Below are positions 3,743-37,622 of a stretch of 64,000 nt of DNA, piece after piece (within the stretch, counting starts at the first letter, position 1; each line of letters begins with the position of its first letter). The notes below the pieces were generated by a model that did not search any database, was not told where the DNA came from, and saw only the letters and a program-made list of their open reading frames with translations. Origin of the DNA: Mobula hypostoma (taxonomy: Eukaryota); NCBI RefSeq assembly GCF_963921235.1, contig NC_086109.1, forward strand, positions 2,108,001 to 2,172,000, given 5' to 3'. The position numbers and the translations under genes were made by a program.

Positions 3743-3928
3743 CGTCAGGTGTACCAGATTTCTTTCCCTTACTTCTGTTCCCACGTGAGCAAGAATCATG
3801 CAGCTTTATGCAGCTTTTATCATAAACCAGATACAGAATGACGATTACGACGAGGATGAGGATGAGGATCACGATGAGGATCACGGTGGCAACCTTCCAA
3901 CCATTGTATGATGTTCTGAGATCTGGAT
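3743..3928 (-). CDS. Gene A transmembrane/juxtamembrane exon: (D)PDLRTSYNGWKVATVILIVILILILVVIVILYLVYDKSCIKLHDSCSRGNRSKGKKSGTPD
   Basis: Acceptor ttttatctccccag|AT at 3929/3928 and donor GACG|gtaggt at 3743/3742; 186 nt, phase 1-1. Encodes a hydrophobic helix of about 23 residues. Homologous to 61318-61470, including the flanking intron. Confidence 0.85.
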
Positions 3929-4840
3929 CTGGGGAGATAAAAGATTTTGTCATTAATCCCATCCTTACACTCCCAGTGACAAGGAATTGATGGATCCAGT
4001 CCATCCCACCACAGGGCAGAGAAAACTCCCTGTCACTGCAACACCGTGCCCCAGTCCTCTGTAGTCAGCCCCACATCACTCTGCTCCACCACCCCGCTCA
4101 CCTTGAATATCTCCATCCCCTCCAAACAGCCCCTCATCACTCCACTCCATATCGCCCCTTCTAATTGTAGTCTCCAATGTCTCTGACAGTATCCTCAATG
4201 ATGTTAGTCCAGCATCCTCACTCAGACCCTCAGTAACCCCTCTCCCCCAGCACACTCTGACTGACTGACTGCCTCTAGTATGAAACGGTGACACAGTCCT
4301 CCCACACTCACAGGACAGGAATTAGACACAGAGGCAAGATCCGTTCACACTGACCCATCACCCACTCGCAGAGCCTGAGTTAGTTGCAGGAATCTGCGCT
4401 CAGTCGGTATATGGAAAGCTGTGGAGATGGAGGGAGGTGATCTGTCTCCCTCTGACTGATGCTGGTGGGAAAGAGGGGAGGGGGTAGTAGGTGGAGATGA
4501 CAATGTTCCTTACACTCTATGATTGGTGTCTGTGGAATGAAATACTGTTGGTAGAGGCTGGAAGATCACCTGGGTGTGACCCTGAAAGAGTGAGATGGTA
4601 AAGTGCACAGCCCAGGTCAGCAGGGCCTCTCTGCATGAAGAAGATTGATTTTTATATCAGGGGCTTTTGTGAGGCCTCAACAATCCTGGGTGAAGAGGCC
4701 GCACAAAGTCAAAGACACAGCACAGGAGGGCAGGAACAGATCCCCCAACCCACACTTCCACTCCCTGCCCCACAATAATTTATCTCTTCCCCCGCTGTGC
4801 TGTTGTTACTGGATTGTACTGTGGTTGTATCTCCTAATGT

Positions 4841-5215
4841 CTGTGGACCTGATGGTCATTGCATTCTCACCACTGGTGGGACACTCCCATAGTTACATCA
4901 CTGTGGACATGGCGGACGGCTTATATTCTCTGGTGGTGGGACCCTCCCACAATTACTACTGTGGACCTGATGGACATCTCTCACCGGTGGTGGTACCATT
5001 CCATTGTTACACCACTGTGGGCCTGGGGAACAGTTCATTCTCTCTGGTGGTAGGATGTTCCCACAGTTACACCACTGTGGGCCTGGGGGACAGATCATTC
5101 TCTCTGACGTGGGACGATCTCACAGTTATACTACTGTGGACCTGGTGGACAGATCATTCTTTCTGGTGGTGGGACGTTCCCACAGTTACACCACTGTGGA
5201 CGCAATGGATACCTC
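4841..5215. repeat. ~60-bp minisatellite, about 6 diverged copies
   Basis: Recurring cccacagttacaccactgtgg(a/g)cctgg unit; ORF 4645..5229 is its translation. Confidence 0.9.
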
Positions 5216-5319
5216 GCTTTCTCCAGTGAGTGATTATCGGACACCCAGTGATATTGCAGCTTCATTCATTCATGTTTCACAGTCGCTGTTCAAACTATTA
5301 TGAAAGAGTGTGGAGAGAA

Positions 5320-5988
5320 ACTATGGTCACACCAACATGAACCTCAAAGTCTGTTTAAAGGGAATGGTTGAGATTGTTGTCTCTTTTGCAACTGTCACAG
5401 CATTGGAAATGTAGGGTTAGACCAAGCTCAGCCTGACAATCGAGTGGATTATGTTGCTTGCCATCAGGAGAACACCTGTAATTAGGACATTGTAGCCATT
5501 TGGAAGACATGATTGCAGGAGGGGCAAGACTGGCAGCTCAATATTACGGGGTTCCGTTGTTTTAGATGTGACAGAGTGGGAGGGATTAAAGGAGGAGGGC
5601 TGGCGTTACTAGTCAGAGAGAATATCACCGCAGAGCTCCATCAGGATTGACTCGAGATCTTGACTAGTGAGGCCTTATGGGCGAACTGAAAAATCAAAAA
5701 AGGATGACCATGTTAATGGGGCTAAATTACAAAATGGCCAATAGTCCGTGGGACTTAGAGGAACAAATTTATAGAGAGCTCGCAGGCTGTTGCCAGAAAC
5801 ACAAGGTTCTTGTAGTAGGTGATTTTAACTTTCCACATAATGGCTGGGAATCCCATACTGTAAAAGGACGAGATGGGATAGAGTTTGTCAAATGTGTTCA
5901 GGAAAGTTTCCTTCATCAGTGTATAGAAGTCCCAACGAGAGTTGCTGATACTTAGTCTGCTATTAGGAAATGAGACAGGGCAGATAAC
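5320..5988 (+). mobile_element. CR1 ORF2 endonuclease region, left part of an element split by the hAT insertion
   Basis: ORF 5677..5955 (VLVVGDFNFPHNGWESHTVKGRDGIEFVKCVQESFL) is an APE endonuclease; the reading resumes at 9515. Confidence 0.85.
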
Positions 5989-14186: not shown

Positions 14187-14929
14187 CCTCCCACCAAAAA
14201 GGAGAATTTTGATCTGTAAGAGTAAAATTTTACCTGCAAACTGCAATATTTAAAACAATACATATAAGGCTACCATATAGAATACTACAGACTAATACAA
14301 CATATTGCAGAACCGTATACAAATAGTAAATTCAACTCCACTATTAAAAAAAATATATAGCAAGCTTAACATCTGGAAAGACAATCGGCCATTATATTAT
14401 CCTTGCCTTTAATGTCAGTTATCAAGAGATCATACTCCTGCAAAATCAAACTCCAATTTAACAACCTTCTAGTTTTGTTTTTCACCTTACTCAAAAACAC
14501 CAATGGATTATGATCTGTATAAACCACAAGTGGTTTCTGAGCTGGGTAAACATACACATCAAAATGCCACAATGCCAAAATAAGTGATAATAATTCCTTC
14601 TCTATTGTGGAGTAATGTATTTGATGCTCATTGAATTTCTTTGAAAGGTAAGCCACAGGATGGTCAACATCATCATAATCATCCTTCGTAGTAACACTGC
14701 TCCTGCAGCTTCATCACTGGCATCCACAGCTATGGAGAATGGCTTTGCAAAGTCAGCTGACCTGAGCACAGGTTGGTGACAGAAGATGGCTTTCAATTTA
14801 TCAAATGCCTCCTGACAAGGCTCTGTCCAAACAAACTTTTCACTCTTCTTCAGGAGGTTAGTCAATGGGAGAGCAATAACAGCAACGTTTTTACAGAACT
14901 GGCAATAATATCCAACCAGTCCCAACAAT

Positions 14930-15200
14930 CTTCCCACATCAAAGTTGCTGGTGAACACAGCAGGCCAGGCAGCATCTGTAGGAAGAGGTGACTAACTGAA
15001 GGAAGAGTGAGTAAGGGATTTGAAAGTTGGAGGGAGAGGGGGAGATCTCTTACTAGCTCTTCCTTCAATTAGTCCTGACGAAGGGTCTCGGCCTGAAACG
15101 TCGACTGCACCTCTTCCTAGAGATGCTGCCTGGCCTGCTGCGTTCACCAGCAACTTTGATGTGTGTTGCTTGAATTTCCAGCATCTGCAGAATTCCTGTT
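14930..15200 (+). repeat. Penelope-derived inverted-repeat element inserted in Gypsy pol
   Basis: Arms aaagttgctggtgaac...gcagcatct / agatgctgcc...ttcaccagcaacttt flank the hammerhead motif. Confidence 0.8.
15071..15106 (+). ncRNA. Minimal type I hammerhead ribozyme motif
   Basis: AGUC-CUGACGA-A-GGG-UCUCGG-CCU-GAAA-C-GUC/GACU: complete catalytic core, helix I AGUC:GACU, palindromic ACGU helix III, predicted cleavage after C15102. Activity not shown. Confidence 0.75.
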
Positions 15201-17862
15201 GTTTGTTGCCAACAATCTTCTGAGAGCTATTTTACCAGTTGGAATGGGAACCTCAGAAATTGCCTGAACTTTTGCCTGAACAGGAGCCAGCCTGCCCTGA
15301 CCTACAACATAACCAAGATAGGTCACAGTGGCATGGCTAAATTCACTCTTAGCTAAGTTAAGTGTACGTTTGGCCTTTGAGAGCCTGTCAAACAGCTTTT
15401 CCACTGCAGAGATATGGGTTTCCCATGTGTCATTCCCTGTGACCAAATCATCAATATAGGCATCCTTTGAATTACAGAATTAATCATTCCCTGGAATGTT
15501 CTTGGAGCATTTTTCATTCCAAATGGCAGAACATTGTATTCATACAACCCAGAAGGCATTAGAAATGCAGTAATTTTCCTACCTCTCTCCGTTCATGGAA
15601 CACACCAATATCCTTTTAACAGATCGATCTTTGTAAGAAACTTAGCCTTTCCAACCTTGTCCACACAATCATTCACTCTAGGGATGGGATAAGCACCTGT
15701 TTTTATTATAGCATTCACCTTTCTGTAATCTGTGCAAAACCTGATACTACCATCTGCTTTAGGTACCATAACACAAGCTGAGATCCAACATGAAGTAGAA
15801 TGCTTAATAATACTATTTTCTAACATATACTCAATTTCTTGTTCAGCAACTCTACATTTTTCAATATTCATGCAATATGGATGTTGTTTTATAGGTTTGG
15901 TATCCCCGACAGCTACATCATGTGAAGCTACTGTGGTTCTTTTTGGGACATTAGGGAACAAGTCCCTAAATTTCATGATCAACTGCTTCATTTGCTGCCG
16001 CTGCTGTGGTTATACATGAGCCAATTTCTCATCAAGAATTTCCAAAACAGTCAAATTCGTCAGTCTGGCAGAAATAATGTTTGGTTTAAAATAGGCCTCA
16101 GATGGATCAGCTAATAAGTTCCCAGAGAGGTTAGATTCATTGTTATTGACAACAACAGTCACAGCTTCTGTCTGTTTCTGATGATACAGCTTAAGCATGT
16201 TTATGTGACAAAGCTGCATTGGCCTTTGTCTATCTGGTGTTTTGACTACATAATCCACCACATTGACTTTAGACACAATCTCATAGGGACCATGAAACCT
16301 GGCTTGCAGAGGGTTTGTCTGGACTGGGAACAACACAAGGACTTTATCTCCTGCCTGGAATGACCTCAATTTGGCTCCCTTATCATACCAAGTTTTTATT
16401 CCTTCCTGGGCTGATTTTAAATTTTCCTTTTCTAAGTTGCAAGCCCTTTGCAATATGCCCTTGAATTTTAAAACGTAGTTTAGCAAATTAATATGCAGTT
16501 TATTGTTAATCCACTGTTCTTTTAATAAAGCCAAAGGTCCTTGGACCCGGTGCCCAAACACAAGTTCAAAGGTCCCTTACTGCAAATAAAAGCAAGTAAA
16601 CTTCCTCATCCCAATCCTTCTCATTTTCAATACAGGATGCCTTAATTGTGGTTTTGAGGGTAGAATGGAATCTTTCTAAGGCCCCTTGGGATTCTGGATG
16701 GTACGCAGACGACGCAGTTTGTTTGGCTCCCAGTTCATAAACTACCTGCTGAAATAATCCTGACATAAAATTACTTCCTTGATCAAACTGGATTTCTTTA
16801 GGCATACAAAATAAAGTGAAAAACTTTATGAGAGCCTTTGACACAGTTTGAGCTTTTATATTCCTAAGAGGTATTGCTTCTGGAAATCTAGATGCTGTAC
16901 ACATGATGGTTAACAAATACTGATGGCCAGCTTTACTCTTTGGCAATGGGCCAACACAATCCACAATAACTTTAGAAAAGGGATCACCAAATGCAGGAAT
17001 AGGCTTCAGTGGGGCCACTGGGGTAACCTGATTAGGTTTAGCCACAACCTGCCCACTATGACAAGTTCGACAAAATGTCACAACATCTTTCCTCAAACTA
17101 GGCCAGAAGAATTGTTTCAAAACCTTGTCCACAGTTTTATTCACACCTAGATGGCCACCCAAGGGCATATTATGGGGCCAAGTTAAAATCTAATTCCTAT
17201 AGACTTCAGGAACTACAACCTGGTAAACAATTGCCCGTTCCTCACTTGCAAATATATCAGGTGGTCTCCACTTCCTCATTAACACCCCATCCTTGATATA
17301 ATATCCTACTGGCACTTTCTCAACCTCATCACCTGAGAGAGCTTTTTCTCCTCAAGGTTGCAATCTCAGGGTCTCTGTTCTGTTCTGCTATAAATCCTTT
17401 CTGGACAGAGACAAATCTTTATAGTCAGACCTAATACAAGAATCTTGGTCAAACAATGAAGGCAGGAAATTCGCTGACAAGTCACCAAAATCTGAGTGCC
17501 TGTTTGGGCTATCATGAGCAGCGGAACCATGCTGCACAGGATCATCTGCATTTGCAAGTTTCTTTGCCCTAGCTCGAGTTACTGCACACGAGGGATAAAT
17601 GTTAGAATCTATCGTTGGATCATCAGTGATTGGCTTAATTGTCAGCTGCACAGCAGGGACAACTTTGCCATCAGCTAGGTCATTCCCTAACAACACAGAA
17701 ACACCTGTCACTGTAAACTGGGTCATAGTCCTATCTTAACAGGTCCTGAAACTAACTCTGACTTCAAAATTACCTTGTGCAGAGGTACAGAAACAGTGTC
17801 ACCCCCAATGCCTTGAATAAGATTTACCTCACCAGTGGCAGTCTCATCACCAAACTTTAGAA

Positions 17863-19026
17863 CGGGGTTCCCAACCTTTTAAGCACTGCGGACCGGCCAA
17901 CGGGGGGAGGAGATGGTTGCCAACGGACAAGAATAGCAGTCAAATATGTTGTGTTTACCCCGAGAAAGACTACAATGACCATGAAGCCTGGCTCGGGCAC
18001 CTGTGGGCGCATGCGTGTACGTGCCCTTTTTTTTCTACAAATCGTTTTTGGCGATTCTGTTCGTGGGGGGCGTTAATCATGATCGAAATACAGGTGATAA
18101 GTGGCTAATACACTCAATTTCATTTCTAAAAGGGTTTACCTAACAAATTTAATATTAAACACACACCGCATATTTTCCTCACATGAATATAGTGATAAGT
18201 CAATTATCAGGGGAGGACAGGGGAGCTTGAAGTAAGTGTTGAACAAACTTCCAGTAGAAGTGGTAGAGGCAGGTTCGTTATTATCATTAAAAGAAAAATT
18301 GGATAGGTATATGGACAGGAAAGGAATGGACGGTTATGGGCTGAGTGCAGGACTAGGTGAGAGTAAACGTTCGGCACGGACTAAAAGGGCCGAGATTGCT
18401 TGTTTCCGTGCTGTGATTGTTATATGGTTATATAAGTCACTTATAAGTCAATAGCATCATAACATTTCAAGTAACGTTTGGATATTAAACACACAGCACA
18501 TATTTTCCCTGTATGAACATATAAAATCATTGCAACACACCAATATCGCTAAATCAGTGGGAGCCCTGGGCTTGTTTCCCTGCAACAAGACGGTCCTATC
18601 GAGGGGTGATGGGAGACAAGGATACTCGAAGGGGGTTCCTTATGTCCAGTCTATTCCACAATTTAGTTTTTGTTACATTCATTGCAGAGATATGTTGGAA
18701 ATGGAAGCAATGTTTTCAGTGCTTTCATGGCTATCTCAGGCTATTTAGCCTTGACTTTGATCCAGAATGCCGGCAGAGACGTTATGTCAAACATATTTTT
18801 CAGCCCGCCGTCATTTGCAAGCTCGAGGAGTTGATCTCCTTCCCGCACTGACATGGATGATACGCGGGTAAGGACCTCGCATGCGTTCAAGGTCAACAGT
18901 GCGTGACAGGGAATGAGGAAAGGTGCAGCTGACTCATATCGCCAAATCAATTCGTTTCCTTGCGGCCCGGTAGCACATGCTTTGTGGCCCGGTACCGGTC
19001 CACGGCCCAGTGGTTGGGGACCGCTG
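17863..19026. mobile_element. Non-autonomous hAT (Charlie-like) element inserted in the Gypsy protease region; carries a CR1 3' fragment at ~18215-18420
   Basis: Ends cggggttcccaacc and (rc) cagcggtccccaacc. Flanks ctttagaa/gactagaa match 5 of 8. The Gypsy frame DSVL|KFGDETATG rejoins when the element is removed. Confidence 0.75.
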
Positions 19027-19986
19027 GACTAGAACACTGTCTAACAAGAGTGACTGAGAAGCCCCCGTATCTCGAAGAATTTTCACTGGTACCACGGTTG
19101 ACCCCTCATTCACTGAAGCAAACCCCACTGACACAAAAGGAATGAATTCTTTCCTAACCGGGTCAGACATCTCAGCCCCTGTCAGAGCTTCATCAGAAGG
19201 TCTGGAACTCTGTGGGTTTACAGGTGTTTCAACATATTGAACACAGGCATCTGGAACTGCCTCCTTTTCCTTCTTCTTCTTTAGGAGGAAACAGTTAGCC
19301 ATAACATGACCAGCTTTCCTGCAGTAGTGACAAATAGGACCAGAACGCCTCTCCTTTAACTGCTTCCCTTCATCCTTACCTTTGTCACTAGTCCCAGATT
19401 TAATTTCTGGTTTACCCTGACTATCCATGCTACTCTTTTGGAAGGTCTTACTCAGGGTAAATTTAAACTTGTGGGATAGAGCAAACTCATCTGACTAATT
19501 TAGCAGATTCTTGCCAAGTGGCCGCATCCTTCTCATCTAAATATGTCTTTATGTCATTATGGACGCACCTTTGAAATTCTTCAATTAAAACTAACTCTTT
19601 CAGTTTGCCGAAATCACCATCCACACTTTTAGATGTGCACAACCGTTCAAAACAAACAGACTTCTCATCAGCAAATTCCACATGAGTCTGGTTCACAGAT
19701 TTCTTCAAATTCCTAAACCTTTGCCTGTAGGCTTCTGGAACCAGCTCCTAAGCTTTAAGCACAGCCTGCTTTACTGTCTCATAATTAGCTGCATCTTCAA
19801 CTGATAGGGCAGAGTAAGCCTGCTGAGCATTACCCTTAATTACACTCTGTAACAGAAGTATTTATCAACCTCAGCCCCATCAAATGGGTGGACCAATTTA
19901 ACTTCCTTCCTAACTGGCAACAAACCTATCACCAGTGTCAAATGCTAGACCCCCCAGCAGTAGCTTCTCTGACCTCGCTAGCTCAA

Positions 19987-21705: not shown

Positions 21706-22872
21706 TGTGATGACATGTGAGCTCATTCGCAGTCTGCTGCAGGAGACAGACCTGACAGATCTCACACCCCATGGATCAGATTAAAGCTCCACAGTCCCCT
21801 TACATCTCGTCATGGACAACAGCTGATGGGAGGTGGAGTCTCTATAAACATCCCCTCCCTCACTGACGGTGCGACCCAGCGTGTGAGTGCCAGAGATAAG
21901 GCTGATCATTCACATCCATGTTCAGACAGAAGTGCTGAGTGGATGATCTCCCTCAGCTTCCTCCTGAGATCCCCCATCACAGAAACCAGTCTCCAGACAA
22001 TTCAGTTCATTCCCTGTGATAGCGGTGTACTGGATACAGCAACAGCTATGGGACCAGACCTCACCCAGGTGTGGTACTGAAGACCTGTGCCACAGAACTA
22101 TGTGGATCTCTGTGCGAGCTGTTCCTGTACAGGTACATCATTGGCATCCCCTGACAATGTGGTTTTCTCAGGTCCGGTCCTGTCCTCAACCCTGGGCTGA
22201 TCTCAGAGAGACCACCTGCTCTGAGACTTGGGGGAGCTGGACAGGAGGAAGAAGGGATAGAGGTGGATACTTCACCTTTGATGGAATCTCTGCATCCCTC
22301 AATGAAGGAGAAGGAGGTGACCTTCCTCCCAGGTGGAGGTTGCCCTGAGGTGCAGGAACCACGTGGTGGGGAAGTTGGCTCCTTCAGGGTGCCAAGGACC
22401 ACACTGTGTGGGGGGAGTTGAATACGGGAGGGTGCCGCCTTCTTCCCCTGTCATGGCCACAGTCCAAAGGAGGACACCGTCCCGAAGAGAAGGGACTGGG
22501 GAGACTCCCGGGATACAAACCCCTCTGTAGATCAGGGTGATGCAACCATGATTCTTTTGCAAGGAGACCACTCTTTTCATCTCCATCGACGACGGCAATT
22601 ATCTTATCGTCTGGGGGAATTTCAGCTCCACCACTGGGGTACACAGTGGCCGCTGTGTGTACCTGTCAATGTCACTGCAGATACTCAGACAGGCTACTCC
22701 AACAAACCCTCCCAAACTCTCCACCTCTACCCCCAAGAATGAATGTCTTGGACACGGACAATCAGGCAGTGGGGTTCAGTAAAGAGTGGAATGGCCAGGA
22801 TCTCCCGTCACCCATTAATTAGGATGTTTCAGGAACTGGTAAAACCCAGGCCCCTCGCTGTGTCTCACTCAC

Positions 22873-23175
22873 CGTTCACTTCCAGTCGCACTCTCGCCTT
22901 AAGTTCAGCTCCAGAACCCACAGCAATTTCCACATCATAATCACCGGCATCCTCTCTCTGTAGATCACGGATTTCCAGACTGAAGTCCCCAGGATGAAGA
23001 GCTATCCGTCGCTTGTACTCCTCAGGACCGAAGCAGGAAATGTTTCCACTTCTGTATTCGGCTTTTCTGGTTCCTTTTGAGCTCCACACCACCTGAGAAA
23101 CGCCCGGCCCGACATTGATCCCAGCAGGTAAGGCGACCGTCTCTCCCCGAGCTCCTTTCACAGTCACCATCCATT
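22873..23175 (-). CDS. Gene A Ig V-set exon 3, CD2/SLAM/CEACAM-N-like, no B-F disulfide
   Basis: Acceptor cttttctcctcag|AA, donor AACG|gtgagt; 303 nt, phase 1-1. Motifs VVW, RIALHPGDFSLEIRDLQREDAGDYDV. Confidence 0.9.
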
Positions 23176-23439
23176 CTGAGGAGAAAAGAGGAGGCAGTCA
23201 GCAGGTGAGCTCCGTGACTGGAGCAGGAATCAGAGTGAGGGGGGTGTTGGGAGGGTGTTTCCCCCTCTTGTGGGATCTAGAACAAGGGCACAGTTTTAGA
23301 ATAAGAGACCATAATTTCTGAGAGAGATGAGGAATGATTTCCCCTCTCCAAGGATCAGGAACCTATGGAATTTTCTCCCCCAGAGAGGTGCTGAGTCACT
23401 GTATTCAAAGCTGAGAGGGATATAGTTCTGAGGGTAGTG

Positions 23440-23815
23440 ATACCTTTAAACATCATTACCTGGCATCTGTATGCTGGAATTGCATGGGTTAAATTGAGAG
23501 TGTTTACTGGGAATTAGATATCACTACATCTTGGTAATGACATGTTTCTGTGGACCCAGCTTGGGTTTTATTTACTGGTTCTCTAATGCATTTTAATCTG
23601 ATGAGCGGTCGGGGATGGGGGGGTTGTTGCTCGCCACCGCTTACACGCTGGAAGGGGGAGCTGGAGGGGGGGGGATCTTAGCGGTTCTCACATTTAACTG
23701 TCGTTCATTCTTTGGGGCACTTTGTTTTTGTGGATGTTTTGCGAAGAAAAGGAATTTCAGGATGTATATTGTATACATTTCTCTGTCATTAAATTGAAAC
23801 TCTGAACCTTTGAAA
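23440..23815 (+). repeat. Non-LTR retroelement 3' end; a related copy is inverted at ~52860-53120
   Basis: Shared text ...ttctttggggcact...ttcaggatgtatatt...tacatttctctg(t/a)cattaaat. Absent from the paralogous intron near 27520-27560. Confidence 0.6.
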
Positions 23816-23949
23816 GACGCAGGGAAGTGGAGCTGAGATCAGGGTCAGACCAACCCCGAATTCAGTGAGCGGGGAGTCGGCTTGAGGTGGGTGAAAGGCC
23901 ACTCACTGTTCCTTGGATAGAAATACAGATGGGAGGGTTAGGATGTTTG

Positions 23950-25234
23950 TAGATGAGATAAGGGCAGATCGTGTCTAACAATCCTGTAGATGAGGGCAGA
24001 TCATGTCTAACAAGCCTGATAGAGTTCTTTGAGGAGGTGACCAGGCATATAGATGAGGGTAGTGCAGTGGATGTGATCTATATGGATTTTAGTAAGGCAT
24101 TTGACAAGGTTCCACACGGTAGGCTTATTCAGAAAGTTAGAAGGCATGGGATCCAGGGAAGTTTGGCCAGGTGGATTCAGAATTGGCTTGCCTGCAGAAG
24201 GCAGAGGGTGGTGGTGGAGGGAGTACATTCAGATTGGAGGGTTGTGACTAGTGGTGTCCCACAAGGTTCAGTTCTGGGACCTCCACTTTTCATGATTTTT
24301 ATTAACGATCTGGATGTCGGGGTAGAAGGGTGGGTTGGCAAGTTTGCAGACGACACAAAGGTTGGTGGTGTTGTAGATAGTGTAGAGGATTGTCAACGAC
24401 TGCAGAGAGACATTGATAGGATGCAGAAGTGGGCTGAGAAGTGGCAGATGGAGTTCAACCCGGAGAAGTGTGAGGTGGTACACTTTGGAAGGACAAACTC
24501 CAAGGCAGAGTACAAAGTAAATGGCAGGATACTTGATAGTGTGGAGGAGCAAAGGGATCTCGGGGTACATGTCCACAGATCCCTGAAAGTTGCCTCACAG
24601 GTGGATAGGGTAGTTAAGAAAGCTTATGGGGTGTTAGCTTTCATAAGTTGAGGGATAGAGTTTAAGAGTCGCGATGTAATGATGCAGCTCTATAAAACTC
24701 TGGTTAGGCCACACTTGGAGTATTGTGTCCATTTCTAGTCACCTCACTATAGGAAGGATGTGGAAGCATTGGAAAGGGTACAGAGGAGATTTACCAGGAT
24801 GCTGCCTGGTTTAGAGAGTATGCATTATGATCAGAGATTAAGGGAGCTAGGGCTTTACTCTTTGGAGAGAAGGAGGATGAGAGGAGACATGATAGAGGTG
24901 TACAAGATAATAAGAGGAATAGATAGAGTGGATAGCCAGCACCTCTTCCCCAGGGCACCACTGCTCAATACAAGAGGACATGGCTTTAAGGTAAGGCGTG
25001 GGAAGTTCAAGGGGGATATTAGAGGAAGGTTTTTTACTCAGAGAGTGGTTGGTGCGTGGAATGCACTGCCTGAGTCAGTGGTGGAGGCAGATACACTCGT
25101 GAAGTTTAAGAGACTACTAGACAGGTATATGGAGGAATCTAAGGTGGGGGCTTATATGGGGGGCAGGGTTTGAGGGTCGGCACAACATTGTGGGCCGAAG
25201 GACCTGTACTGTGCTGTACTATTCTATGTTCTAT
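23950..25234 (+). mobile_element. Young 5'-truncated CR1, RT to 3' tail
   Basis: ORFs 23971..24651 (YMDFSKAFDKVPH, PQGSVLGP, KFADDTK) and 24760..25173, separated by two point stops; tail ctattctatgttctat. Confidence 0.95.
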
Positions 25235-25659
25235 AAAGATTGATGGTGCAGAGAATAGATGCAACTGGACATGGATCAGATGCAGACATGGGTGGGGAAA
25301 CGTGGCTGCATGTTGATCAGGGGGGTAAAGAAGGGACTTTACATGCTTGTCCTCATCAGTCGAGGCACTGAGTTCAAAAGTCCAGAAGTTATGCTACATC
25401 TTTAAAAACTCTGATTGAGCGACATCTGGAGTGTTGCATTCATTTCCAGCCACCGCGTTAAAGGAACAACGTGGAGGCTTTGGAGAGGGAACAGACATTT
25501 ACCATCTGGGTGCCTGGACTACAGGGCATGTGCTGGAAGAAAAAGTTGGAGAAATTTTGGTTGTTTCCTCACAGTGTTGGAGGTTGAGGATAGACCTGAT
25601 ACAAGTGTTTAACATTTATAAGAACACAGATAAAGTAGACAGCCAGTATTCTTTCCCCA

Positions 25660-25950
25660 AGGGTTGTACTATAGCGTAGTGGTTAGCACAACACTTTACA
25701 GTACCAGTGAACCAGGTTGAATTCCCGCTACCCGTAAGGAGTTTGTACATTCTCCCCGTGTCCACGTGGGATTCCTCTGCGTGCTCTGGTTTCCTCCCAC
25801 AGTCCAAAGACGTACCGATTGGATGGTTAATTGGTCATTATAAATTATCCTGTGATTAGGCTGGGTTACAACCGGGGGATTGCTGGGCAATGTGGTTCAA
25901 ATCCCAGAAGGGACTATTCCCTGCTGTATCTCAATAAAATATAAAAAAAC
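25660..25950 (+). mobile_element. tRNA-derived V-SINE (HE1-like)
   Basis: A-box-like gtagtggttagc, B-box-like gttgaattccc, conserved gtgctctggtttcctcccacagtccaaagac core, A-rich tail. Confidence 0.75.
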
Positions 25951-26987
25951 AAATGAAATTGTCTAACACCAGAGATGGTGTATTTACAGTGAAGATGATC
26001 AAAAATTCAAAGGAGATGTGTGGGGCAAATTTGTCTTTACACACAGAGTGGTGGGAGACTGAAATGGGCTGCCGGGAGTGGTGATAGAGGCAAAGGCCAG
26101 AGAGATTTTTGAGAGGCTGTCACATACACACATGAATGTGTAGAGAATAAAGGCATATGGAGCACGAACAGTCAGAAGGGATTAGCTTAACTGGGTTCCA
26201 TTAGCAATGAGTTTGGCAGCACATCATGAGCTGAGGAACTGTTCCTGTGATGTTCCATTCCCCACGTTCTGACGTTCTCCTCCCTCCAATGGAACCCGTT
26301 AAATCTGGGGTGGAGGAGATTTCTCAGACAAACGTTGCTGAGTGAGATTATTGTGAATGTGATATTACTGTTGGAGTGAGTCAGGAACCATATTGGTGTG
26401 TGTGAGTGTGCTGCTGTGTCCGTGTACTGTGTCACTCACTGGGACACTATATTCAGTGTAATGAACACACAGGGTCTCACTCAGCACAGCACAGCATGAA
26501 GGCTGAGGAATAAACACCTTGCTGAGCTCAGACCTCAGTCTGGAGAATTACCAAGCAGTGCCTTCTGAAAATGGGATCCCTGAACATGAAAGACCAGGTC
26601 TTTGACCTGGGGATACGGAGGGATCTGTTGAAAAGACCCACAGATATAGACTGTTCGACCCAGTCATCAGCCCCTCCCACCAGATTGGCCTATCTCCTGT
26701 TCCCCCACACCACCTGCTCATCTCCTCCAACCTCGGAGTCACGAGGTTCCCCATTGACAGTTCGATGCTTCACAGCCTCTGGTCCAGTCTCCGGGGATGT
26801 GGTGAGTGTGTCCTCCAGACTCACACTGTCTCAACCCCACTACACTGGGACCGTGAGCCCAGCTCTGGACACGGACAGTCAGTGGGGTTTAGAAAACAGG
26901 GGAACACACAGGATCTGCCTTCACCCATTAATTGGAAGTGTTAGAGGAACCAAAGAAACCTGGGCCCCTCTGCAATGCTTCACTCAC

Positions 26988-27290
26988 CGTACACCTCCAG
27001 TCGCATTTTGTTCTGAGTCTGTGTTCCTGAACTTGCTGTAACAGCCACCTCATAATAACCAATGTCCTTTATCTGTAGATCACGGATTTCCAGACTGAAG
27101 GTCCCAGGATGAAGAGTTATCCGTCGCTTGTACTCCTCAGGACCGAAGTAAGAAATGACTCCATTTGGATATTCTGCTATTGTGGTTCCATCTCTTCTCC
27201 ACACCACCTGAGAAACGTCCAGCCCACGTGTGATCCCAGCAGGTAGGGAGACCAACTGTCCCCAAGCTCTTGTCACGGTCCCCATCCACT
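26988..27290 (-). CDS. Gene A Ig V-set exon 2 (chimeric V3/V1 type)
   Basis: Acceptor cttgtctcctcag|AG, donor TACG|gtgagt; 303 nt, phase 1-1; open frame; DLQIKDIGYYEV. Confidence 0.9.
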
Positions 27291-27969
27291 CTGAGGAGAC
27301 AAGAGGAGGCAGTCAGCCGGTGAGTTCAGTGACTGGAGCAGGAATCGGGGATGTTTCCCCCTCCTGTATGATCTAAAACGAGGGCACAGTTTCAGAATAA
27401 GGGACCATAATTTCAGACAGATATGAGGAAGGATTTCTCTTATCTAAGGTTCAGGAATCGATGGAATTTTCTTCCCCAGAGAGTTGTGGAGGCTGAGTCA
27501 CTGTATTCAAGGTTCAGTCAGAGTTTTGATCTGGAGAGGATTTGGGGAGAGGGTGGAAACAGGCAGGAAAGTAGAGCTGAGATCAGGGTCAGACCAACCC
27601 TGATTTCAGTGAGTGGGGAATAGGCTCTAGATGGGCCAAAGGCCTCCAACAGACTGTCGGTGTTGTGGATGGTGCAGAGGAGCGCCAATAGATGCAATTG
27701 GACATGGATCAGATGCAGACATGGGTGGGGAAACGTGGCTGCATGTTGATCGGGTGCCCAAGAGGGTCTTTACATGCATGTCTTCATCAGTCGAGGCACT
27801 GTGTTCAGAAGTCAGGAAGTTATGCTACATCTTTAAAAACTCTGATCAAGCTACATCTGGAGTATTCCATTGGACTAATTTGGGCTGTTTCCTCTGAGTG
27901 TCAGAGCTGATACAAGCTTATGACATTTATAAGGACACAGATGAAGTAGACAGATAGTATTTTTTTCCC

Positions 27970-28262
27970 AGGGGTGGCACGAATGGGTAGTCCTTAGCAC
28001 AACACTTTACAGTACCAGTGAACCAGACTGAATTCCCGCTGCCCGTAAGGAGTTTGTACATTCTCCCCGTGTCCACGTGGATTCCCCTGTGTGCTCTGGT
28101 TTCCTCCCACAGTCCAAGGACATACCAATTGCATGGTTAATTGGTCATTATAAATTGTCCTGTGATTAGGCTGGGTTACAATTGGGGGATTGCTGGGCAG
28201 TGTGGTTCAAATCCCGGAAGGGACTATTCCCTTCTGTATCTCGATAAAATTTTTAAAAAAAT
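27970..28262 (+). mobile_element. Second HE1-like SINE copy, duplicated together with its intron
   Basis: Same SINE with the same flanks as 25660-25950. Confidence 0.75.
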
Positions 28263-29091
28263 CAAATAAGAGGAGTCCAATACCAGAGATTGTGCATTTA
28301 CAGTGACAGGGGTAAATTCAAAGGAGATGTGTGGGGCAAGATTTTCTTTACACACAGAGTGGTGGGAGCCTGAAATGGGCTGCCGGGAGTGGTGGTAGAG
28401 GCAAAGCAAACCCATTAAACCTGGGGTGGAGGAGATTTCTCCGGCAGACGCTGCTGAGTGAGATTATTGTGAATGTGATATTACTGTGAGAATGAGTCAG
28501 GAACCATATTGCTGTGTGTGAGTGTACTGTTGTGTCTGTGTACTGTGTCACTCACTGGGACACTATATTCAGTGCAATGAACACACAGGGTCTCACTCAG
28601 CACAGCACAGCATGAAGGCTGAGGAATAAACACCTTGCTGAGCTCAGACCTCAGTCTGGGCAATTACCAAGCAGTGCCTCTGAAAATGGGATCCCTGAAC
28701 ATGACAGACCAGGCCTTTGACCTGGGGATACAGAGGGATCTGTTTAACTGACCAACAGATATAGACCGTTCAGCCCATCCACAAGTCCCTTCCACCATAT
28801 TAGCCTATCTCCCGTTCCCTGTTCCCCATCTGCTCATCTCCTCCAACCTCGGAGTCACGAGGTTCCCCATTGACAGTTTGATGCTTCACAGCCTCTGGTC
28901 CAGTCTCCGGGGATGTGGTGAGTGTGTCCTCCAGACTCACACTGACTCAACCTCACTACACTGGGACCGTGAGCCCAGCTCTGGACACGGGCACTCAGTG
29001 GGGTTCAGTAAACAGGGGAACACACAGGATCATTAATTGGGGTGCTTCAGGAACTGATGAAACCCGGGCCCCTCCGCAGCATCTCACTCAC

Positions 29092-29412
29092 CGTACACAT
29101 CCAGTCGCATTTTGTTCTGAATCTGTGCTCCTGAACTTGCTGTGACAGTCACCTCATAATCACCAGTGTCCTCTCTCTGCAGATCACGGATTTCCAGACT
29201 GAAGTTCCCGGGATGAAGAGTTATCCGTCGCTTGTACTCCTCAGATCCGTAATAGTCACTGATCTTGTTTGAATATGACACTATCTTCATCCTGGGTGAC
29301 AACCGTCTCCACACAAGCTCAACAACGTCCGGTCCGACTGGGATCCCAGGATGTAAGGAGACCGACTGTCCCCGTGTTCCATTCACAGTGGTCGGGGAAT
29401 CCCCAGTCCCAG
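29092..29412 (-). CDS. Gene A Ig V-set exon 1 (N-terminal domain)
   Basis: Acceptor ctcttgtctcctcag|CT, donor TACG|gtgagt; 321 nt, phase 1-1; GTGDSPTTVNGTRGQSVSL...LVW...DLQREDTGDYEV...RLDVY. Confidence 0.9.
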
Positions 29413-30109
29413 CTGAGGAGACAAGAGGAGACAGTCAGCAGGTGAATACAGTAACTGTAGAATCAGAGCCGGGTGGATCATAGTTACAGGAGCAGGCCAT
29501 GTGGCCCATCATCTGACTTCTGACCCTGAGAGAGACCCGGCACACAGTTCCTCCATCACACAGTGAGCCCACCGGGGGAACAGAGTGAAGACTCTCCACA
29601 CCCGGCCCTGAGGAAGGGAGTTGCAGCCTGCAGCCAGATATCGATGGTCATGACAGGGAGGCAGAGACATGGCAAATGGGCTCCAGTCTGGAGAAAAGGT
29701 TTGTAGTGTTTGGAGAGAGTGAACACAATGAGGGAATACGGGAAATCACCGTCTACACTGTCCCTTCACCCACTCCCAGTGCACAGGTCATGTACAGAAT
29801 GAAGCTCGTCCACCCTGTCCTTCTGCAGAGGTCGACCGTGGCACTGGTCCTCTCGGCTGACCCTGACCACTGGTTCTTCACAGTGACGTTGTCGGATTAA
29901 CATGACATTGTTGGATTAAGGTCTACAATTTTTGTTTTTTAATTGTCCTTTTCCTTGTTGCTTTAGCTTTCTTTTTGAGTTTATATTTGAATTATCACCT
30001 GTTTGTTAACTTTTAGTAAGTGTGGTATCTTTGGTTCTAGCCTTCTGCGGGGGGAGAGGAAGGAGAACTGGCTGGAAGATGGTGGGTGGTCAGGTGGGTG
30101 GGGAAAGGT

Positions 30110-32880: not shown

Positions 32881-33789
32881 CTCAACCTGTTAACTACAAT
32901 TTTGTCCAGTCATCAGCCTCTCCTTGCTAGTAGTCTCACTACTCGCTGCCTCCATTTGTAAACCCACCTCCCCATCCTCAGTGCTATCACTGGCTCCCAT
33001 CCCCCTGCCAAATTAGCTTAATTCCCAGACAACAGACCTGAAAAGATATTGGTCCCCTTCAGCTTCAGGTGTAACCCATACCTTTTGTACATGTCATACC
33101 TTCTCCGTAGGAGAGATCCCAAATAAAACACGAGTCGCCTCTTTACCATTCTGTGGTGTGTGGAAGTAGATTTGGTACGGTCTGCTCCTACAGACTCTAC
33201 CATTCCTTATCCTTGTCTGCAAACCATTCCTGCCTGATGATCTGCTGTGCCATCTGGTGGGAGATGAGACTCTCAGTGAAGGTCTCTCTGTGGAGAGACC
33301 TCGGGTGGAGAGTGGTGCACACTGTGGTCAGAATCAAATTCAGGTTTATTCATTCATTCATTATGTTCTGTTTCGTCTAACATGGACGATCATGGTCTTG
33401 ACCATGATTGCTCTAGACAAATTTTCTACTAAAGTTTTTTTGCCATTGCCACCTTTTGGCAGTGTCTTTACAAGATTTGTCACCCAACTATTATTAATCC
33501 TCTTTAGAGATTGTCTGCCTTGTGTCAGTGGTTCCATAAGCAGGATTTGTGATGTGCACCAGCTGCTCAATCGAACATCTGCCACCAATCCGGTTAATTG
33601 TCACTGACCAATGCTGTGAAATCTGTTGTCCAGTGCAAGGCTGCCATGAAACAACAATTACACTAAATGACAAACAATAAACCATGACAAAGAGGAATAG
33701 CAAGGTATTGTTACTGGGTCCATGGTTCAGAAATCTGATGGCGGACGGGAAGAAACTGTTCCTCAATCAGAGTGTGGCTGTTCAGGTAT

Positions 33790-35310
33790 CGAAAGGAAAG
33801 CAGACAGGCAGAGGGGTGGTGCAGCTCTGTTGGTAAAAAATGAAATCAAATCATTAGAAAGAGATGACGTAGGATCAGAATGTGTAAAATCGTTTTGGGT
33901 TGAATTAAGGAACTACAAGGGTAAAAAGATTGTGATGGGAGTTATTCACAGAATCCCAAACAGAAGTAAAGATGTTGTTGACAAAGTACAACAGCAGCCA
34001 GAAAATGCATGTCAAAAGGGCAGCATTACAATTGTCATGGAGGATTTCAATGTGCAGGTAGATTGGGAAAATCAAGTTGCTGCTGGAGTTTCTGGAATAA
34101 GTATGAGATCTGTTTTTGGCCCACGAGGGGATCAGCTATTCTGGATTGGGTGCTGTGCAATGTACTAGGATTGAATAGAGGGCTTCAGGTAAAGGAACAC
34201 TTCGGGACAAGTGACTTGAGCAGAGAAGCTGAAGTTTGCTGTATTGTCATCACAGTGGAGTAAAGGGAATTACGGAGGCATGGGAAAGGAGCTGACCAAA
34301 ATTGAATGCTACCAGGGATTATTGTAAAGCAGCAATGACTGGAATTTCTGGAGCAATTCGTAAGGTGCAGGATATATACATCCCAACGAAGAAGTAAAAA
34401 TTATAAGGAGTTAGTGGATCGCGAAGATTTTAAAAACTAACAGAAGGCAAACAAAAAGTCATAAAGAAGGAAAAGAGGGAATATGAATGTAAGCCAGCCA
34501 ATAGTATTAAAGAAGACCAAAAGTTTCTTCAGATATTCAAAGTGCAAAAGTGAGGTGCCAGTAGAAATTGGACCACTGCAAAATAATGCGGGAGAGGTAG
34601 TAATGTGTTGACAAGGAAATGGCAGATGAATTGAATAACTATTTTGCATCAGCCTTTACTGTGGAATACACTAGCAGAATGCTGGCAGTTCAAGAATGTC
34701 GGGGAGCTGTACTGTATAAAGTTGCCATTCCTAAGGACAAGGTTCTTGGGAAACTGAAAGGTTTGAAGATTGGTAAGTCACCTGGATTGTGAAGATGTCG
34801 GTAACAATCTTTCAAGAATCAAGAGATTCTGGCATTGTTCAGGAGGACTGGAAAATTGCAAATGTCACTCCACTCTTCAAGAAGGGAGGGAGGTAGTAGA
34901 AAGGAAATTATGGGCTAGTTAGTCTGACCTCAGTGGCTGGGAAGATGTTTGAGTTGATCGTTAAGAATGTCATTTTGGGGTATTTGGAGGGACATGATAA
35001 AATAGGCAGCAGTCAGCATGGTTTCCTCAAGGGGAAATCATTTCTAACAATCTGTTAAAGAGTTCTTTGAAGAAATAATAAGCAGGATAGATAAAAGTAA
35101 AGAAGAATCGGGCGCTGTTGTGTACTTGGAATTTCAGACGGTGTCACACGTGAGGTTGCTTAACAAGCCCATAGTATTACAGGGAAATGGTTGTCTGGCA
35201 GGAGGCAAAGACTGGGGATAAAAGGAGCCTTTTCTGGTTGGTTGCCAGTGACTGGTGATGTTCTACAGGGGTCTATGTTGAGACTGATTCTTTTCACGTT
35301 ATATGTCATT
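33790..35310 (+). mobile_element. Degraded CR1 endonuclease-RT
   Basis: GGGAALLVKNEI...FWVELRNYKG...VMEDFN; later CR1 RT-type motifs. Confidence 0.8.
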
Positions 35311-35585
35311 TCATTTTTAAATCTTTTTACTAATATATAATCTTCTACAGCTATAAAATACAGAAATTCAACAAATTAGTAAATACATAATTAATAAAGC
35401 TGAAGAGAAAAAAAACTTGTATATGCTAATGAAAAAACAATTTTATAAAAGAAAAAGAAGGGAAAAAGAGAACCCCAGCTAACTTAAAAAAAACCACTAA
35501 CTATAAAACAAAAAAAAAGAGGAAAAATCCCATTAGGAACCAACTCTCGGAGCAATACATCTTACAATCATTTCAATCATTTATT

Positions 35586-35648
<63 letters not shown>

Positions 35649-36525
35649 AGAAAAAGAAAACAACAACCGCCAAATCACATTTATATAACATAAAACTGGA
35701 AGGAAACAATGTAAATTGATTCAAATTAAATGATAATATTTAGCAAAAGAGCCCCACCTTCTCTCAAAATCAAATCAGGTATCAAAAGTTCTACTTCTAA
35801 TTTTTTCCAAACTAAGACATAACATTACTTGGGAAAACCATTGAATTAGTGTAGGAGCAGAGGTATCTTTCCACTTCAAAAAAATAGCTCTTCTTGCCAA
35901 CAATGTAACAAATGCAATTACATGTTGGTTTGAAAATGAAATACCCTGAATATAATGTGGAACTATTTCAAATAGAACAATCAATGTATTAGGCATTTGA
36001 TAGAGTTGAATGGATTTATTTGTTTAATGTATTAGAGAGATTTGGCTTTGGTAATAATTTTAATAAGTGGATTCAAATAATCTCTAAGAACCCTATCACT
36101 ACTGTCATTACTAATAATCTTAGGTCTCCCTTTTTTTCCTTTCACGAGGTACTCGACAAGGGTGTCCATTAAGTCCTTTATTATTTAATCTCACATTGGA
36201 GCCTTTGGCTATAACAATTCACGAAGCTAAAAATATTGATGGTATTTCTATAAATGGGACCATACATAAGATTACTCTTTATGCAGATGATCTTTTGGTT
36301 TATATCTCGAATCCTGAAGAATCAATTCCTAATCTTTTGGAATTATTAAATGATTTTGGAAAATTTTCAGGATATAAACTTAATTTAAATAAAAGTGAAT
36401 TGTTCCCTTTAAATGTTCCTGTTTTTATATACTGTATAAGGATATTCCATTTAGAATTGTGAACTCTTTTAAATATTTGGGTATTATCATTACAAAAAAA
36501 TAAAGATCTTTATAAAGCTAATCTG
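35310..36525. mobile_element. L1-clade LINE with 5' inversion: 3' end on minus (35310-35996), RT segment on plus (35997-36525)
   Basis: Minus ORF LARRAIFLKWKDTSAPTLIQW..LEKIR abuts plus-strand FDRVEW...RQGCPLSPLLF...LYADDLL...FGKFSGYKLNLNKS. Confidence 0.75.
35587..35647. repeat. Compound (TA)n(TG)n(TA)n microsatellite
   Basis: Directly visible. Confidence 0.97.
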
Positions 36526-36799
36526 CAAAATCCACTGTAGTCACACACCCAAGCTACTGTGACAGGACCTTGCAAACCTGTCACCTCTCCCAACAGGAAG
36601 GATAAGAGCAGCAGTACAGGAGAACACCACCACCTGCAGGTTCCCCTCCATGTCCCACAGCCTCCCTGGCCAGCTGGACAAACCACCTCCAGCCAGCTGG
36701 ACAGATCATCTCCTTCTCACTGTGGCATGGAGTTCTCCGCCACACTGCAGTTCACAGAAGCAATGTTTGTACCATCCAGAGGGATTCTTCACCCTGTCC

Positions 36800-37030
36800 C
36801 CACAGTGGCCTCCACGTGTAGTAAAGACACCTACCTTAGGCTATTGTTTAACAAACACAGATCCATCCTCCATTCCACAATTCCAAGGAAAATCATCTCC
36901 AAACTCCTAGAAATGAGACACAACACCTCCCTTTGCAACTGTATGCTTGGCCTCCTGACCAACAGAACACAATCAGGAAGGAAGCACTGTGACATCCACA
37001 GCACAATTATTCTCACAGCGTTTGCACCAT
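36800..37030 (+). mobile_element. Highly decayed Rex/Babar RT fragment
   Basis: STIPRKIISKLLEMRHNTSLCNCMLGLLTNRTQS resembles TIIP..L..KL..LGL..SLCNWILDFLT.R.Q. Confidence 0.55.
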
Positions 37031-37248
37031 GAGGAAAACCTCTCTCCAACTCTAGAGTTTGATCGAAATCATTTCTGTCTGCATGGACGAAGGGAGAGAG
37101 AGCGAAAGGCAAAGGTAGGCTCTGAGTTATGAAGAGAGGTAGACAGAGCTCTGAACACTGGGAACAGGGAGCGGGATAAACAGAGCTCTGACCATAGGGG
37201 ACGGGGGAAGAAGAAGAGGGGGTGTGGAGAGGAGAGGGGGGAGTGATG

Positions 37249-37503
37249 AGGGAGAGACAGAACTCTGAACACAGGGGAGAGAGGACAGGGAGAGACAGAA
37301 CTCTGAACACAGGGGAGAGAGGACAGGGAGAGACAGAACTCTGAACACAGGGGAGAGAGGACAGGGAGAGACAGAACTCTGAACACACGGGAGAGAGGAC
37401 AGGGAGAGACAGAACTCTGAACACAGGGGAGAGAGGACAGGGAGAGACAGAACTCTGAACACAGGAAGAGAGGACAGGGAGAGACAGAACTCTGAACACA
37501 CGG
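37249..37503. repeat. 38-bp minisatellite, about 7 copies, at the start of gene A intron 1
   Basis: (ggagagacagaactctgaacacaggggagagaggacag)n. Confidence 0.95.
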
Positions 37504-37570
37504 GAGAAGGGCGAAGCTGGAAGATCTCCCTGTTCTCTAATAACTATCGATCACCACAATCTGACCTTAC

Positions 37571-37622
37571 CCACACGGGCGACCCAGGCGGCAACACATA
37601 GCAGGGACGAGACCATCCACAT
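37571..37622 (-). CDS. Gene A signal-peptide exon MWMVSSLLCVAAWVARV(A)
   Basis: ATG at 37622 with A at -3; 52 nt ending in phase 1 at GTGG|gtaagg; joins V1 in frame (VAGTGDS); CpG-rich context. Confidence 0.8.

Follow-up and report, generated by a model that had tools for sequence, protein, structure and literature searches.

The DNA analysed is a 64-kb stretch of Mobula hypostoma (referred to as the window). Its minus strand very probably carries five of the six coding exons, all but the last, of LOC134355361, an intact and transcribed gene whose product, a CD2/SLAM-family member of type I membrane topology, has a V-V-V ectodomain and no C2 domain. An earlier sequence-only reading had proposed five minus-strand phase-1 exons in one frame, and the exon limits re-derived from the sequence agreed with it (Table 1). 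Spliced together, the five exons give 1165 nt and 388 open codons, and all junctions are in phase 1. A polypyrimidine tract and AG precede every internal exon, GTGAGT or GTAGGT follows it, and each Ig domain occupies a single phase-1 exon, with the leader and the transmembrane (TM) segment on exons of their own. The same reading had also let the frame end at position 3743, and this part did not stand: 3743 marks a splice donor, and a final coding exon of 21 residues is situated past the start of the window.

Table 1. Exons of LOC134355361, exons of the neighbouring paralogue, and members of the V-only subfamily (positions are those of the window)
Feature	Position	Strand	Remarks
Exon 1: ATG and signal peptide, 17 codons + 1 nt	37571..37622	minus	52 nt, donor GTAAGG
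Exon 2: V1, N-terminal V-set domain	29092..29412	minus	321 nt, phase 1-1
Exon 3: V2	26988..27290	minus	303 nt, phase 1-1
Exon 4: V3, membrane-proximal V-set domain	22873..23175	minus	303 nt, phase 1-1
Exon 5: short stalk, TM helix, first 27 cytoplasmic residues	3743..3928	minus	186 nt, ends at GT donor
Paralogue, TM exon	61318-61470	minus	equal to P0162
Paralogue, tail exon	near 53269-53325	minus	equal to P0162
V-only subfamily, M. hypostoma			LOC134355361/63/64/65
V-only subfamily, M. birostris			P0164
V-only subfamily, Hemitrygon akajei			P0002/P0157/P0159
V-only subfamily, Hypanus sabinus			P0158/P0160

Over residues 1-388 the spliced protein matches P0165, the 409-aa RefSeq model of LOC134355361, at 100% identity; exon 1 supplies residues 1-18 and exon 5 residues 328-388 (both identical). 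The model is annotated as "uncharacterized protein LOC134355361"; the gene has therefore already been predicted by public automatic annotation as an uncharacterized protein. P0165 joins V3 straight to the TM exon. Because the gene of P0165 spans 40.1 kb, its last exon falls off the window, and the last 21 residues of the model are not encoded anywhere in the window. The TM helix contains no charged residue, and the tail of about 47 residues has tyrosines only at the membrane boundary, none of them in an ITSM or ITIM context. Positions 1-3742, searched for exons bearing either motif, gave chance motifs only. In the signalling SLAM receptors SLAMF1 and SLAMF3-7, the ITSM (TxYxxV/I) recruits SAP or EAT-2.

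The adjacent gene, also on the minus strand, is a paralogue with the V-V-V layout. Exon 5 is homologous to the TM exon of this paralogue, preceding intron sequence included, and the V3 domain of P0162 ends in the same last 19 residues as V3 of LOC134355361. A tblastx comparison of 1-3760 with 37.7-64 kb returned low-complexity and repeat matches only. V-C2-V models with neighbouring LOC numbers lie on the same 98-Mb record.

The three ectodomain exons had been read as V-set domains that lack the B- and F-strand cysteines. Pfam V-set matches of 41, 32, and 26 bits for V1, V2, and V3, together with inspection of the cysteine positions, confirmed this reading: the B/F pair is absent from all three domains, and the sole ectodomain cysteine lies at a non-canonical site in V3. 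The domain linkers are one or two residues long. The membrane-proximal two-disulfide C2-set domain of the V-C2 unit, which is present in paralogues, is absent from the window and from the RefSeq model. The sequence-only reading had found no C2 exon in the 19-kb intron between V3 and the TM exon, and homology searches gave the same result for the whole window. A tblastn search with nine C2-bearing or other relatives detected no C2 exon, and a C2 HMM built from 38 relatives and searched against the six-frame translation of the window at maximum sensitivity gave a best E value of about 1. The 64 kb contain no V exon beyond the three.

The V-only layout is not confined to this gene. Nine V-V-V-TM models and one V-V-V-V-TM model were found in M. 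hypostoma, M. birostris, Hemitrygon akajei, and Hypanus sabinus (Table 1); all of them come from automatic annotation and bear the names 'uncharacterized', 'Ly-9-like' or, wrongly, 'unc-89-like'. P0164 of M. birostris is the ortholog (86% identical), and the TM segment and tail of these two proteins share only about 30% identity with the corresponding parts of the remaining subfamily members. The gene of P0002 spans 47 kb. All relatives found in skate, sawfish, and shark have V-C2 or mixed V/C2 layouts. In the domain tree, V2 and V3 of the window pair with V2 and V3 of Hemitrygon, respectively (100/86 and 100/89), and the sequence comparison thus shows the V-V-V layout as predating the split between devil rays and whiptail stingrays. 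The layout is shown to have originated by tandem duplication of a unit consisting of a V exon and its flanking intron. Within the CD2/SLAM family, V-V-V-TM is an architectural variant specific to the lineage of stingrays and devil rays. It had been suspected to be unusual and possibly lineage-specific, and it was indeed found only in stingrays and devil rays, yet in at least ten models from four species.

Expression of the gene was assessed in four sequencing runs (X1, X2, X25, and X26). The records of these runs give their RNA status as a guess; they were taken as RNA because they cover exons only and their joints are spliced. When the V1 exon alone was used for the search, 79-100% of its sampled words were present in the four runs, and a search with a 6.6-kb stretch, in which repeats dominated, gave shares no higher than 0.35. 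Transcript contigs from all four runs cover V2 and V3 at a depth of about 75-560, and unique intron bins have a depth of 0, which indicates that the gene is expressed. The V2-V3 joint (26988|23175) was found in four of four runs, with GT..AG ends on the minus strand. The 3' end of V1 was found spliced to the start of V2: a joint that 'goes back 303' is the V1-V2 splice, as its 12 mismatches against the V2 end are exactly the 12 V1/V2 difference positions and all eight listed substitutions carry the V1 letters. Both joints lie at the exact exon limits in the four runs, in line with the exon order proposed earlier. Further downstream, a 300-nt contig of X1 comprises 113 nt of the V3 exon end and 187 nt unlike the intron, an extension equal to the 186-nt TM exon plus one base common to the intron and the next exon. 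Contigs in three runs end 4 nt past the V3 donor, which marks a branch in the assembly graph. We infer the V3-TM join from the RefSeq model, from the 187-nt extension of one contig, and from the lack of any other exon candidate.

Two other arrangements of these exons were considered. The V exons could be alternative, mutually exclusive or leftovers of duplication, the real proteins being V-TM or V-V-TM. This seems unlikely, since V1-V2 and V2-V3 joints are present in contigs from four runs, no V1-V3 joint is among the joints listed, and all three V frames are open in two Mobula species, with V2 and V3 orthologous by position to those of Hemitrygon. It does draw on the existence of V-TM and V-V-TM relatives, e.g. 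P0001 'isoform X2' (173 aa) and P0166, and on a dN/dS near 1 among the three V exons (0.74-1.04), so that no clear purifying selection is seen in the paralogue comparison; rare exon-skipping isoforms, moreover, would be dropped by contigs. Alternatively, V3 could splice elsewhere than to 3928-3743, either to another terminal exon, giving a secreted or GPI-linked product, or to an exon for a further domain that went unrecognised within the 19-kb intron, and here the indirect nature of the evidence for the V3-TM join and the contig ends 4 nt past the V3 donor are the points in favour. However, transcripts of the neighbouring paralogue would produce just such a 4-nt branch if they had the V3 end in common with this gene: the two TM exons start with ATCC and then diverge, and the 19 residues that P0162 has in common with this gene are consistent with such sharing. 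The X1 contig runs on for the length of the TM exon plus 1 nt, the last V domain is joined directly to the TM exon in the RefSeq models of ten genes from four species, and the sampled open reading frames of the V3-TM intron are retroelement and transposase fragments; the intron itself has no Ig-like exon. Such a different splice of V3 is judged a little less probable still than skipped or alternative V exons. The contiguous V-V-V-TM transcript is preferred over both.

The family assignment was weighed in the same way. It is very improbable that the domains derive from a CEACAM, nectin, HEPACAM-like or pIgR-like multi-V family instead of CD2/SLAM. The automatic names of relatives are admittedly mixed (CEACAM5-like, NCAM2-like, HEPACAM2-like, and unc-89-like), CEACAM and nectin N-domains appear lower down the V1 fold list, and the best whole-chain structural match is pIgR. 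Whole-chain Foldseek was set aside as family evidence, since multi-Ig proteins of every kind (pIgR, titin, contactins) score in it. A profile search against solved chains gave SLAMF5 as the best match (7.7e-7), followed by CD2 and CD48, with SLAMF6 also among the best. Receptor_2B4 exceeded its Pfam cut-off on V1 (21.5 bits against 21), and no other family-specific Pfam model did so. The V1 model (pLDDT 90.7) returned 2B4, CD48, CD84, and CD2 as its top 12 Foldseek matches (TM 0.75-0.90), all of them CD2/SLAM members. In addition, V1 of this gene shares a starred tree clade with V1 of P0003, a close paralogue whose V-C2 units match the V-C2 of SLAMF6 at an E value of 1.5e-11, and close paralogues carry the NCBI names 'SLAM family member 8-like', 'Ly-9-like', and 'CD48 antigen-like'. 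Membership of the V domains in the CD2/SLAM family, as first suggested by the sequence-only reading, is thus supported both by sequence and by modelled fold.

To our knowledge, the CD2/SLAM members studied so far have a V-C2 or V-C2-V-C2 ectodomain. SLAMF8, SLAMF9, CD48, and CD58 resemble LOC134355361 in having an N-terminal V domain that lacks the B/F disulfide, phase-1 exons that each encode one domain, a type I topology, and a short tail without tyrosine switch motifs; they are V-C2, however, whereas the ray protein has no C2 domain and two extra V domains between V1 and the membrane. Ly9 (SLAMF3, CD229) is the only mammalian SLAM receptor that we know to have a duplicated ectodomain, and its V-C2-V-C2 layout is present in the ray paralogue P0003, which has a near-identical signal peptide and a similar V1. 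In Ly9 the V-C2 pair was duplicated and the long tail carries ITSMs, whereas in LOC134355361 the V exon alone was duplicated and there is no ITSM. An all-V chain is also seen in pIgR, with five tandem V-type domains and no constant-type domain. Although pIgR is the best whole-chain structural match, it is only about 20% identical and is unrelated beyond the Ig fold; its V domains retain the canonical disulfide, which those of the ray protein lack, and V1 alone ranks CD2/SLAM first.

The protein was modelled as three Ig domains with block means mostly of 82-93 pLDDT and about 70 at the domain junctions, and residues 328-371 were modelled as a helix. A V1 homodimer model scored 0.48 against 0.02 for the best of three controls, a pass that may reflect memory of solved SLAM-family dimers; the runs agreed in 100% of contacts, and the partner pLDDT was 90. 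Among proteins solved as one-chain pairs, 21 of 30 attained the mark used, against 0 of 23 solved as single chains; the test is weaker on animal proteins (7 of 16). The modelled V1 interface comprises residues 53, 57-61, 72-73, 108, and 110-116, which we read as the predicted C, C', C'', and FG region. The protein may serve in adhesion or recognition at the cell surface, as CD48, CD58, SLAMF8, and SLAMF9 do, and unlike the ITSM-signalling SLAM receptors. The membrane-distal V1 would use its GFCC'C'' face, the front sheet that serves homophilic binding in the signalling SLAM receptors, to contact either a second V1 or a paralogue on an opposing cell, a mechanism given a roughly even chance. V2 and V3 would stand in for the C2 domain as a stalk and might add binding surfaces.

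It is the C2 domain that determines how far V1 stands above the membrane and hence how wide the cell-cell gap is. A conserved, expressed all-V version shows that the CD2/SLAM family can dispense with the C2 domain, and it offers a natural test of stalk composition against adhesion geometry. More tentatively, the rays may hold a fast-diverging multigene CD2/SLAM subfamily, shared by stingrays and devil rays, in which the C2 stalk was replaced by extra V domains, so that each protein carries up to three or four potential binding modules; we consider this doubtful at present. Should V2 and V3 also bind ligands, the proteins would be multivalent receptors for self, paralogues or pathogens, a mode that we know of for no CD2/SLAM member. 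In that case, selection on recognition would account for the 14% by which the two Mobula orthologues differ in amino-acid sequence. The practical gain is modest, in that the gene models are already public, though unnamed or misnamed. Our literature search found no description of the gene or of ray or shark SLAM/CD2 genes; slamf genes have been mapped to the elasmobranch MHC chromosome (PMC10751288).

The limits of the exons were read on the minus strand at the places proposed by the sequence-only reading and then rebuilt by script. All five proposed exons were recovered with their sizes, and they form one frame in which every junction is in phase 1, the joined 1165 nt giving 388 open codons. 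Each internal exon has a pyrimidine tract with AG on its upstream side and GTGAGT or GTAGGT on its downstream side. The frame had been taken to span 3743-37622; its exons stand, but position 3743 is a splice donor and not the end of the gene.

Exons of the CD2/SLAM-family gene and other features of the window
Feature	Position	Strand	Description
Exon 1 (leader)	37622-37571	-	52 nt, begins at ATG
Exon 2 (V1)	29412-29092	-	321 nt
Exon 3 (V2)	27290-26988	-	303 nt
Exon 4 (V3)	23175-22873	-	303 nt
Exon 5 (TM)	3928-3743	-	186 nt
LTR-retrotransposon pol region, V3-TM intron	14366-19428	-	same strand as gene; long open pieces; integrase (200 aa), RNase H, reverse transcriptase, gag-like zinc-knuckle ORF
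TM exon of neighbouring gene	61318-61470	-	translation identical to the P0162 TM
Degenerate TM-like stretch	61165-61284	-	second such stretch, ~35-50 nt downstream of the neighbour's TM exon
Tail exon of neighbouring gene	53269-53325	-	two AG acceptors, 2 nt apart
Minisatellite	53396-61050		7.6 kb; 30-nt C-rich unit, ~265 copies; GC 0.64, GC skew -0.86
Minisatellite	37249-37507		38-nt unit x 6.8, 97% identity; ~60 nt downstream of exon 1 donor
Minisatellite at window start	1-623		35-nt unit x ~15

The predicted product begins with a hydrophobic leader, followed by three Ig domains (~100 residues each), a short stalk, a hydrophobic, uncharged segment of 24 residues and a basic cytoplasmic stretch of 27 residues. 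The architecture is that of a type I membrane protein: three V domains, one uncharged TM and a short motif-free tail. The three domains matched Pfam V-set with 41, 32 and 26 bits, and V1 also passed the cut-off of Receptor_2B4 (21.5 versus 21 bits). The canonical B- and F-strand cysteines are absent from V1, V2 and V3, as had been claimed, and the 64-kb window holds exactly three V exons of this type. All 388 residues of the spliced frame recur unchanged (100% identity) in the RefSeq protein P0165 ('uncharacterized protein LOC134355361 [Mobula hypostoma]', 409 aa), which runs 21 residues further. The coding sequence of these last 21 residues was not found in the window; since LOC134355361 spans 40.1 kb in its record, the last exon would lie ~2 kb past the window start. 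The gene model, including the direct V3-TM junction, is thus already public in RefSeq. A search of the published literature found no paper describing the gene; the sole related statement found was that slamf genes map to the elasmobranch MHC chromosome (PMC10751288).

Contigs of four runs, from a single study and a single organism, were compared with 22500-28499. Of the words sampled from the V1 exon, 79-100% were present in these runs. The summed contig depth over V3 and V2 was ~75-560, whereas unique intron had depth 0 at 26100-26299 and 27300-27499 in every run and at 23300-23499 in three of them; interspersed repeats in the same region reached contig depths in the thousands. Because V2 and V3 are covered while unique intron bins are not, this pattern is that of spliced RNA, although 'RNA' is a guess in the run records. 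The joint 23175|26988 was present in contigs of all four runs and is the V2→V3 splice, the skipped part ending in CT..AC on the plus strand, that is, GT..AG on the gene strand. A joint leading from 27290 back to 26988 was also present in 4/4 runs. In a contig of run X1, 172 nt of the V2 start without mismatch adjoin a 139-nt part that matches the V2 end except at 12 positions; across those 139 nt the V1 and V2 ends differ at exactly 12 positions, and all 8 listed substitutions are V1 letters, so this joint is the V1→V2 splice. The proposed joining of V1, V2 and V3 therefore holds in transcripts, and exon-only cover and spliced joints, from runs recorded as 'RNA' by guess, show that the gene is expressed.

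Unique intron adjoining the V3 donor was nearly uncovered (depth 3). One 300-nt X1 contig follows the V3 end without mismatch for 113 nt and then continues for 187 nt off the stretch, as compared with the 186 nt of the TM exon; since the next intron and the next exon both start with G (split codon GGN), a break of the assembly graph after 187 nt would be expected. In the other three runs, contigs end 4 nt beyond the V3 donor. A branch there is expected, since the TM exon starts ATCCAG in this gene and ATCCTG in the neighbouring paralogue, whose protein (P0162) agrees with this one in the final 19 residues of V3. Both lengths fit a putative V3→TM junction.

Many of the ray and shark relatives gathered by profile search over 1.84 billion representative proteins do have a C2 domain. 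When nine C2-bearing relatives were compared with the window by tblastn, the sole matches were to the three V exons, to the leader and to TM and tail exons. A C2 HMM built from 38 C2 segments of relatives, run at maximum sensitivity over six-frame open stretches of at least 15 residues, found no C2 exon in the window (best E-value ~1). Within the 19-kb V3-TM intron, the ORFs sampled were retroelement or transposase pieces, namely LTR element integrase, RNase H and reverse transcriptase at 14.4-17.2 kb on the minus strand, LINE reverse transcriptases and a DUF4371-type transposase. These three lines of evidence confirm that the intron lacks a C2 exon, and the window holds none, intact or moderately decayed.

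The CD2/SLAM-like character of the V domains, suggested from sequence alone, was upheld by the Receptor_2B4 match, profile search and structure prediction. Among solved chains, a profile of the three domains had its best matches in SLAMF5 (7.7e-7), CD2, CD48 and SLAMF6, and the V-C2 unit of P0003, a V-C2-V-C2 ray paralogue, matched the SLAMF6 ectodomain at 1.5e-11. When the AlphaFold model of V1 (pLDDT 90.7) was searched with Foldseek, the first 12 matches were all 2B4, CD48, CD84 or CD2 (TM 0.75-0.90, rmsd 1.7-3.7 Å). The whole-protein model shows three Ig domains and a TM helix, with block means mostly of 82-93 pLDDT and ~70 at junctions. The polymeric Ig receptor (pIgR), a classic all-V chain, was its top whole-chain structural match; this was attributed to the repeated fold alone, and kinship beyond the Ig fold was rejected. 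The gene has V domains that lack the disulfide and resemble those of CD2/SLAM proteins, and its domain exons are in phase 1; the V-C2 unit is absent, and the tail of P0165 has no tyrosine motif and none of the ITSMs of signalling SLAMs. The gene is therefore filed as an architectural variant inside the CD2/SLAM family, closest in logic to SLAMF8, SLAMF9, CD48 and CD58, which have no ITSM.

Domain parsing of ~85 relatives recovered SP-V-V-V-TM in P0165, P0163 and P0162 of M. hypostoma, P0164 of M. birostris (86% identical to the studied protein), P0002, P0157 and P0159 of Hemitrygon akajei, and P0158 and P0160 of Hypanus sabinus; P0161 of M. hypostoma has four V domains. The sawfish, skate and shark relatives found were V-C2, V-C2-C2, V-V-C2, V-C2-V, V-V or V-only. 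The idea of an unusual, possibly lineage-specific receptor is thus supported, but not as a single case: the gene belongs to a subfamily of at least ten models across four species, and exactly this protein is already predicted in RefSeq. The 404-aa orthologue P0164 is publicly named 'muscle M-line assembly protein unc-89-like', a misnomer.

A maximum-likelihood tree built from 55 V domains pairs V2 and V3 of the window with Hemitrygon V2 (100/86) and V3 (100/89), respectively, so the triple-V layout is older than the devil ray/whiptail stingray split and has been kept in several paralogues. V2 and V3 are sisters (94/96), and V1 falls in a starred clade with V1 of paralogues that are V-C2-V or V-C2-V-C2. 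The duplicated unit took in intron as well as exon: V1 and V2 units share 85% identity over 1066 nt, ~680 nt of it downstream intron, and V2 and V3 units 78% over 669 nt, including ~220 nt of upstream intron. Across 26293-27510, 28409-29460 and 22749-23408, V2 shares downstream intron only with the V1 unit and upstream intron only with the V3 unit, which fits V2 being a V3/V1 chimera formed by unequal crossing-over. The V1-like C-terminal end of V2 is also found in Hemitrygon, so such an event would be old. The last 41 residues of V3 (22873-22985) differ from P0162 at one position while the first half is strongly different, a pattern suggestive of gene conversion in the 3' half of the V3 exon between the two genes.

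The layout is conserved but the sequence evolves fast: 14% of residues differ between the two Mobula orthologues, most of all in V3 and the tail. The dN/dS among V exons is 0.74-1.04. We propose that the protein would act as an adhesion or recognition ligand rather than a signalling receptor, with V1 as its putative binding module; V2 and V3 may serve as a stalk alone or may bind as well. A two-copy V1 model scored 0.48 against 0.02 for the best control, three runs agreeing in 100% of contacts with a partner pLDDT of 90; the pass mark was reached by 21/30 proteins whose solved structure is a pair of one chain, by 0/23 with a single-chain structure and, among animal proteins, by 7/16. The modelled contacts (residues 53, 57-61, 72-73, 108 and 110-116) would, by our reading of the strands, fall within the C, C', C'' and FG elements; SLAM homodimers use this face in the NTB-A and CD84 structures. 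Because such dimers are already solved, the pass may reflect likeness to them and not binding.

Upstream, the neighbouring gene on this strand is a V-V-V paralogue (LOC134355365, protein P0162) that has its V exons beyond 64000. In TM and tail, the studied gene and P0164 are only ~30% identical to all other V-V-V members. Between the two TM exons, the exon ends are kept (DP... and GKKSGT[PS]D) and the preceding intron sequence is similar; the tail of this one lineage is therefore diverging fast. In the neighbour's tail exon, the first acceptor gives '...SDEIR*', matching the RefSeq model. Use of the second yields 18 tail residues that end in GGEHSS and are conserved in stingray orthologues. 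Most of the neighbour's TM-to-tail intron is occupied by the 7.6-kb minisatellite.
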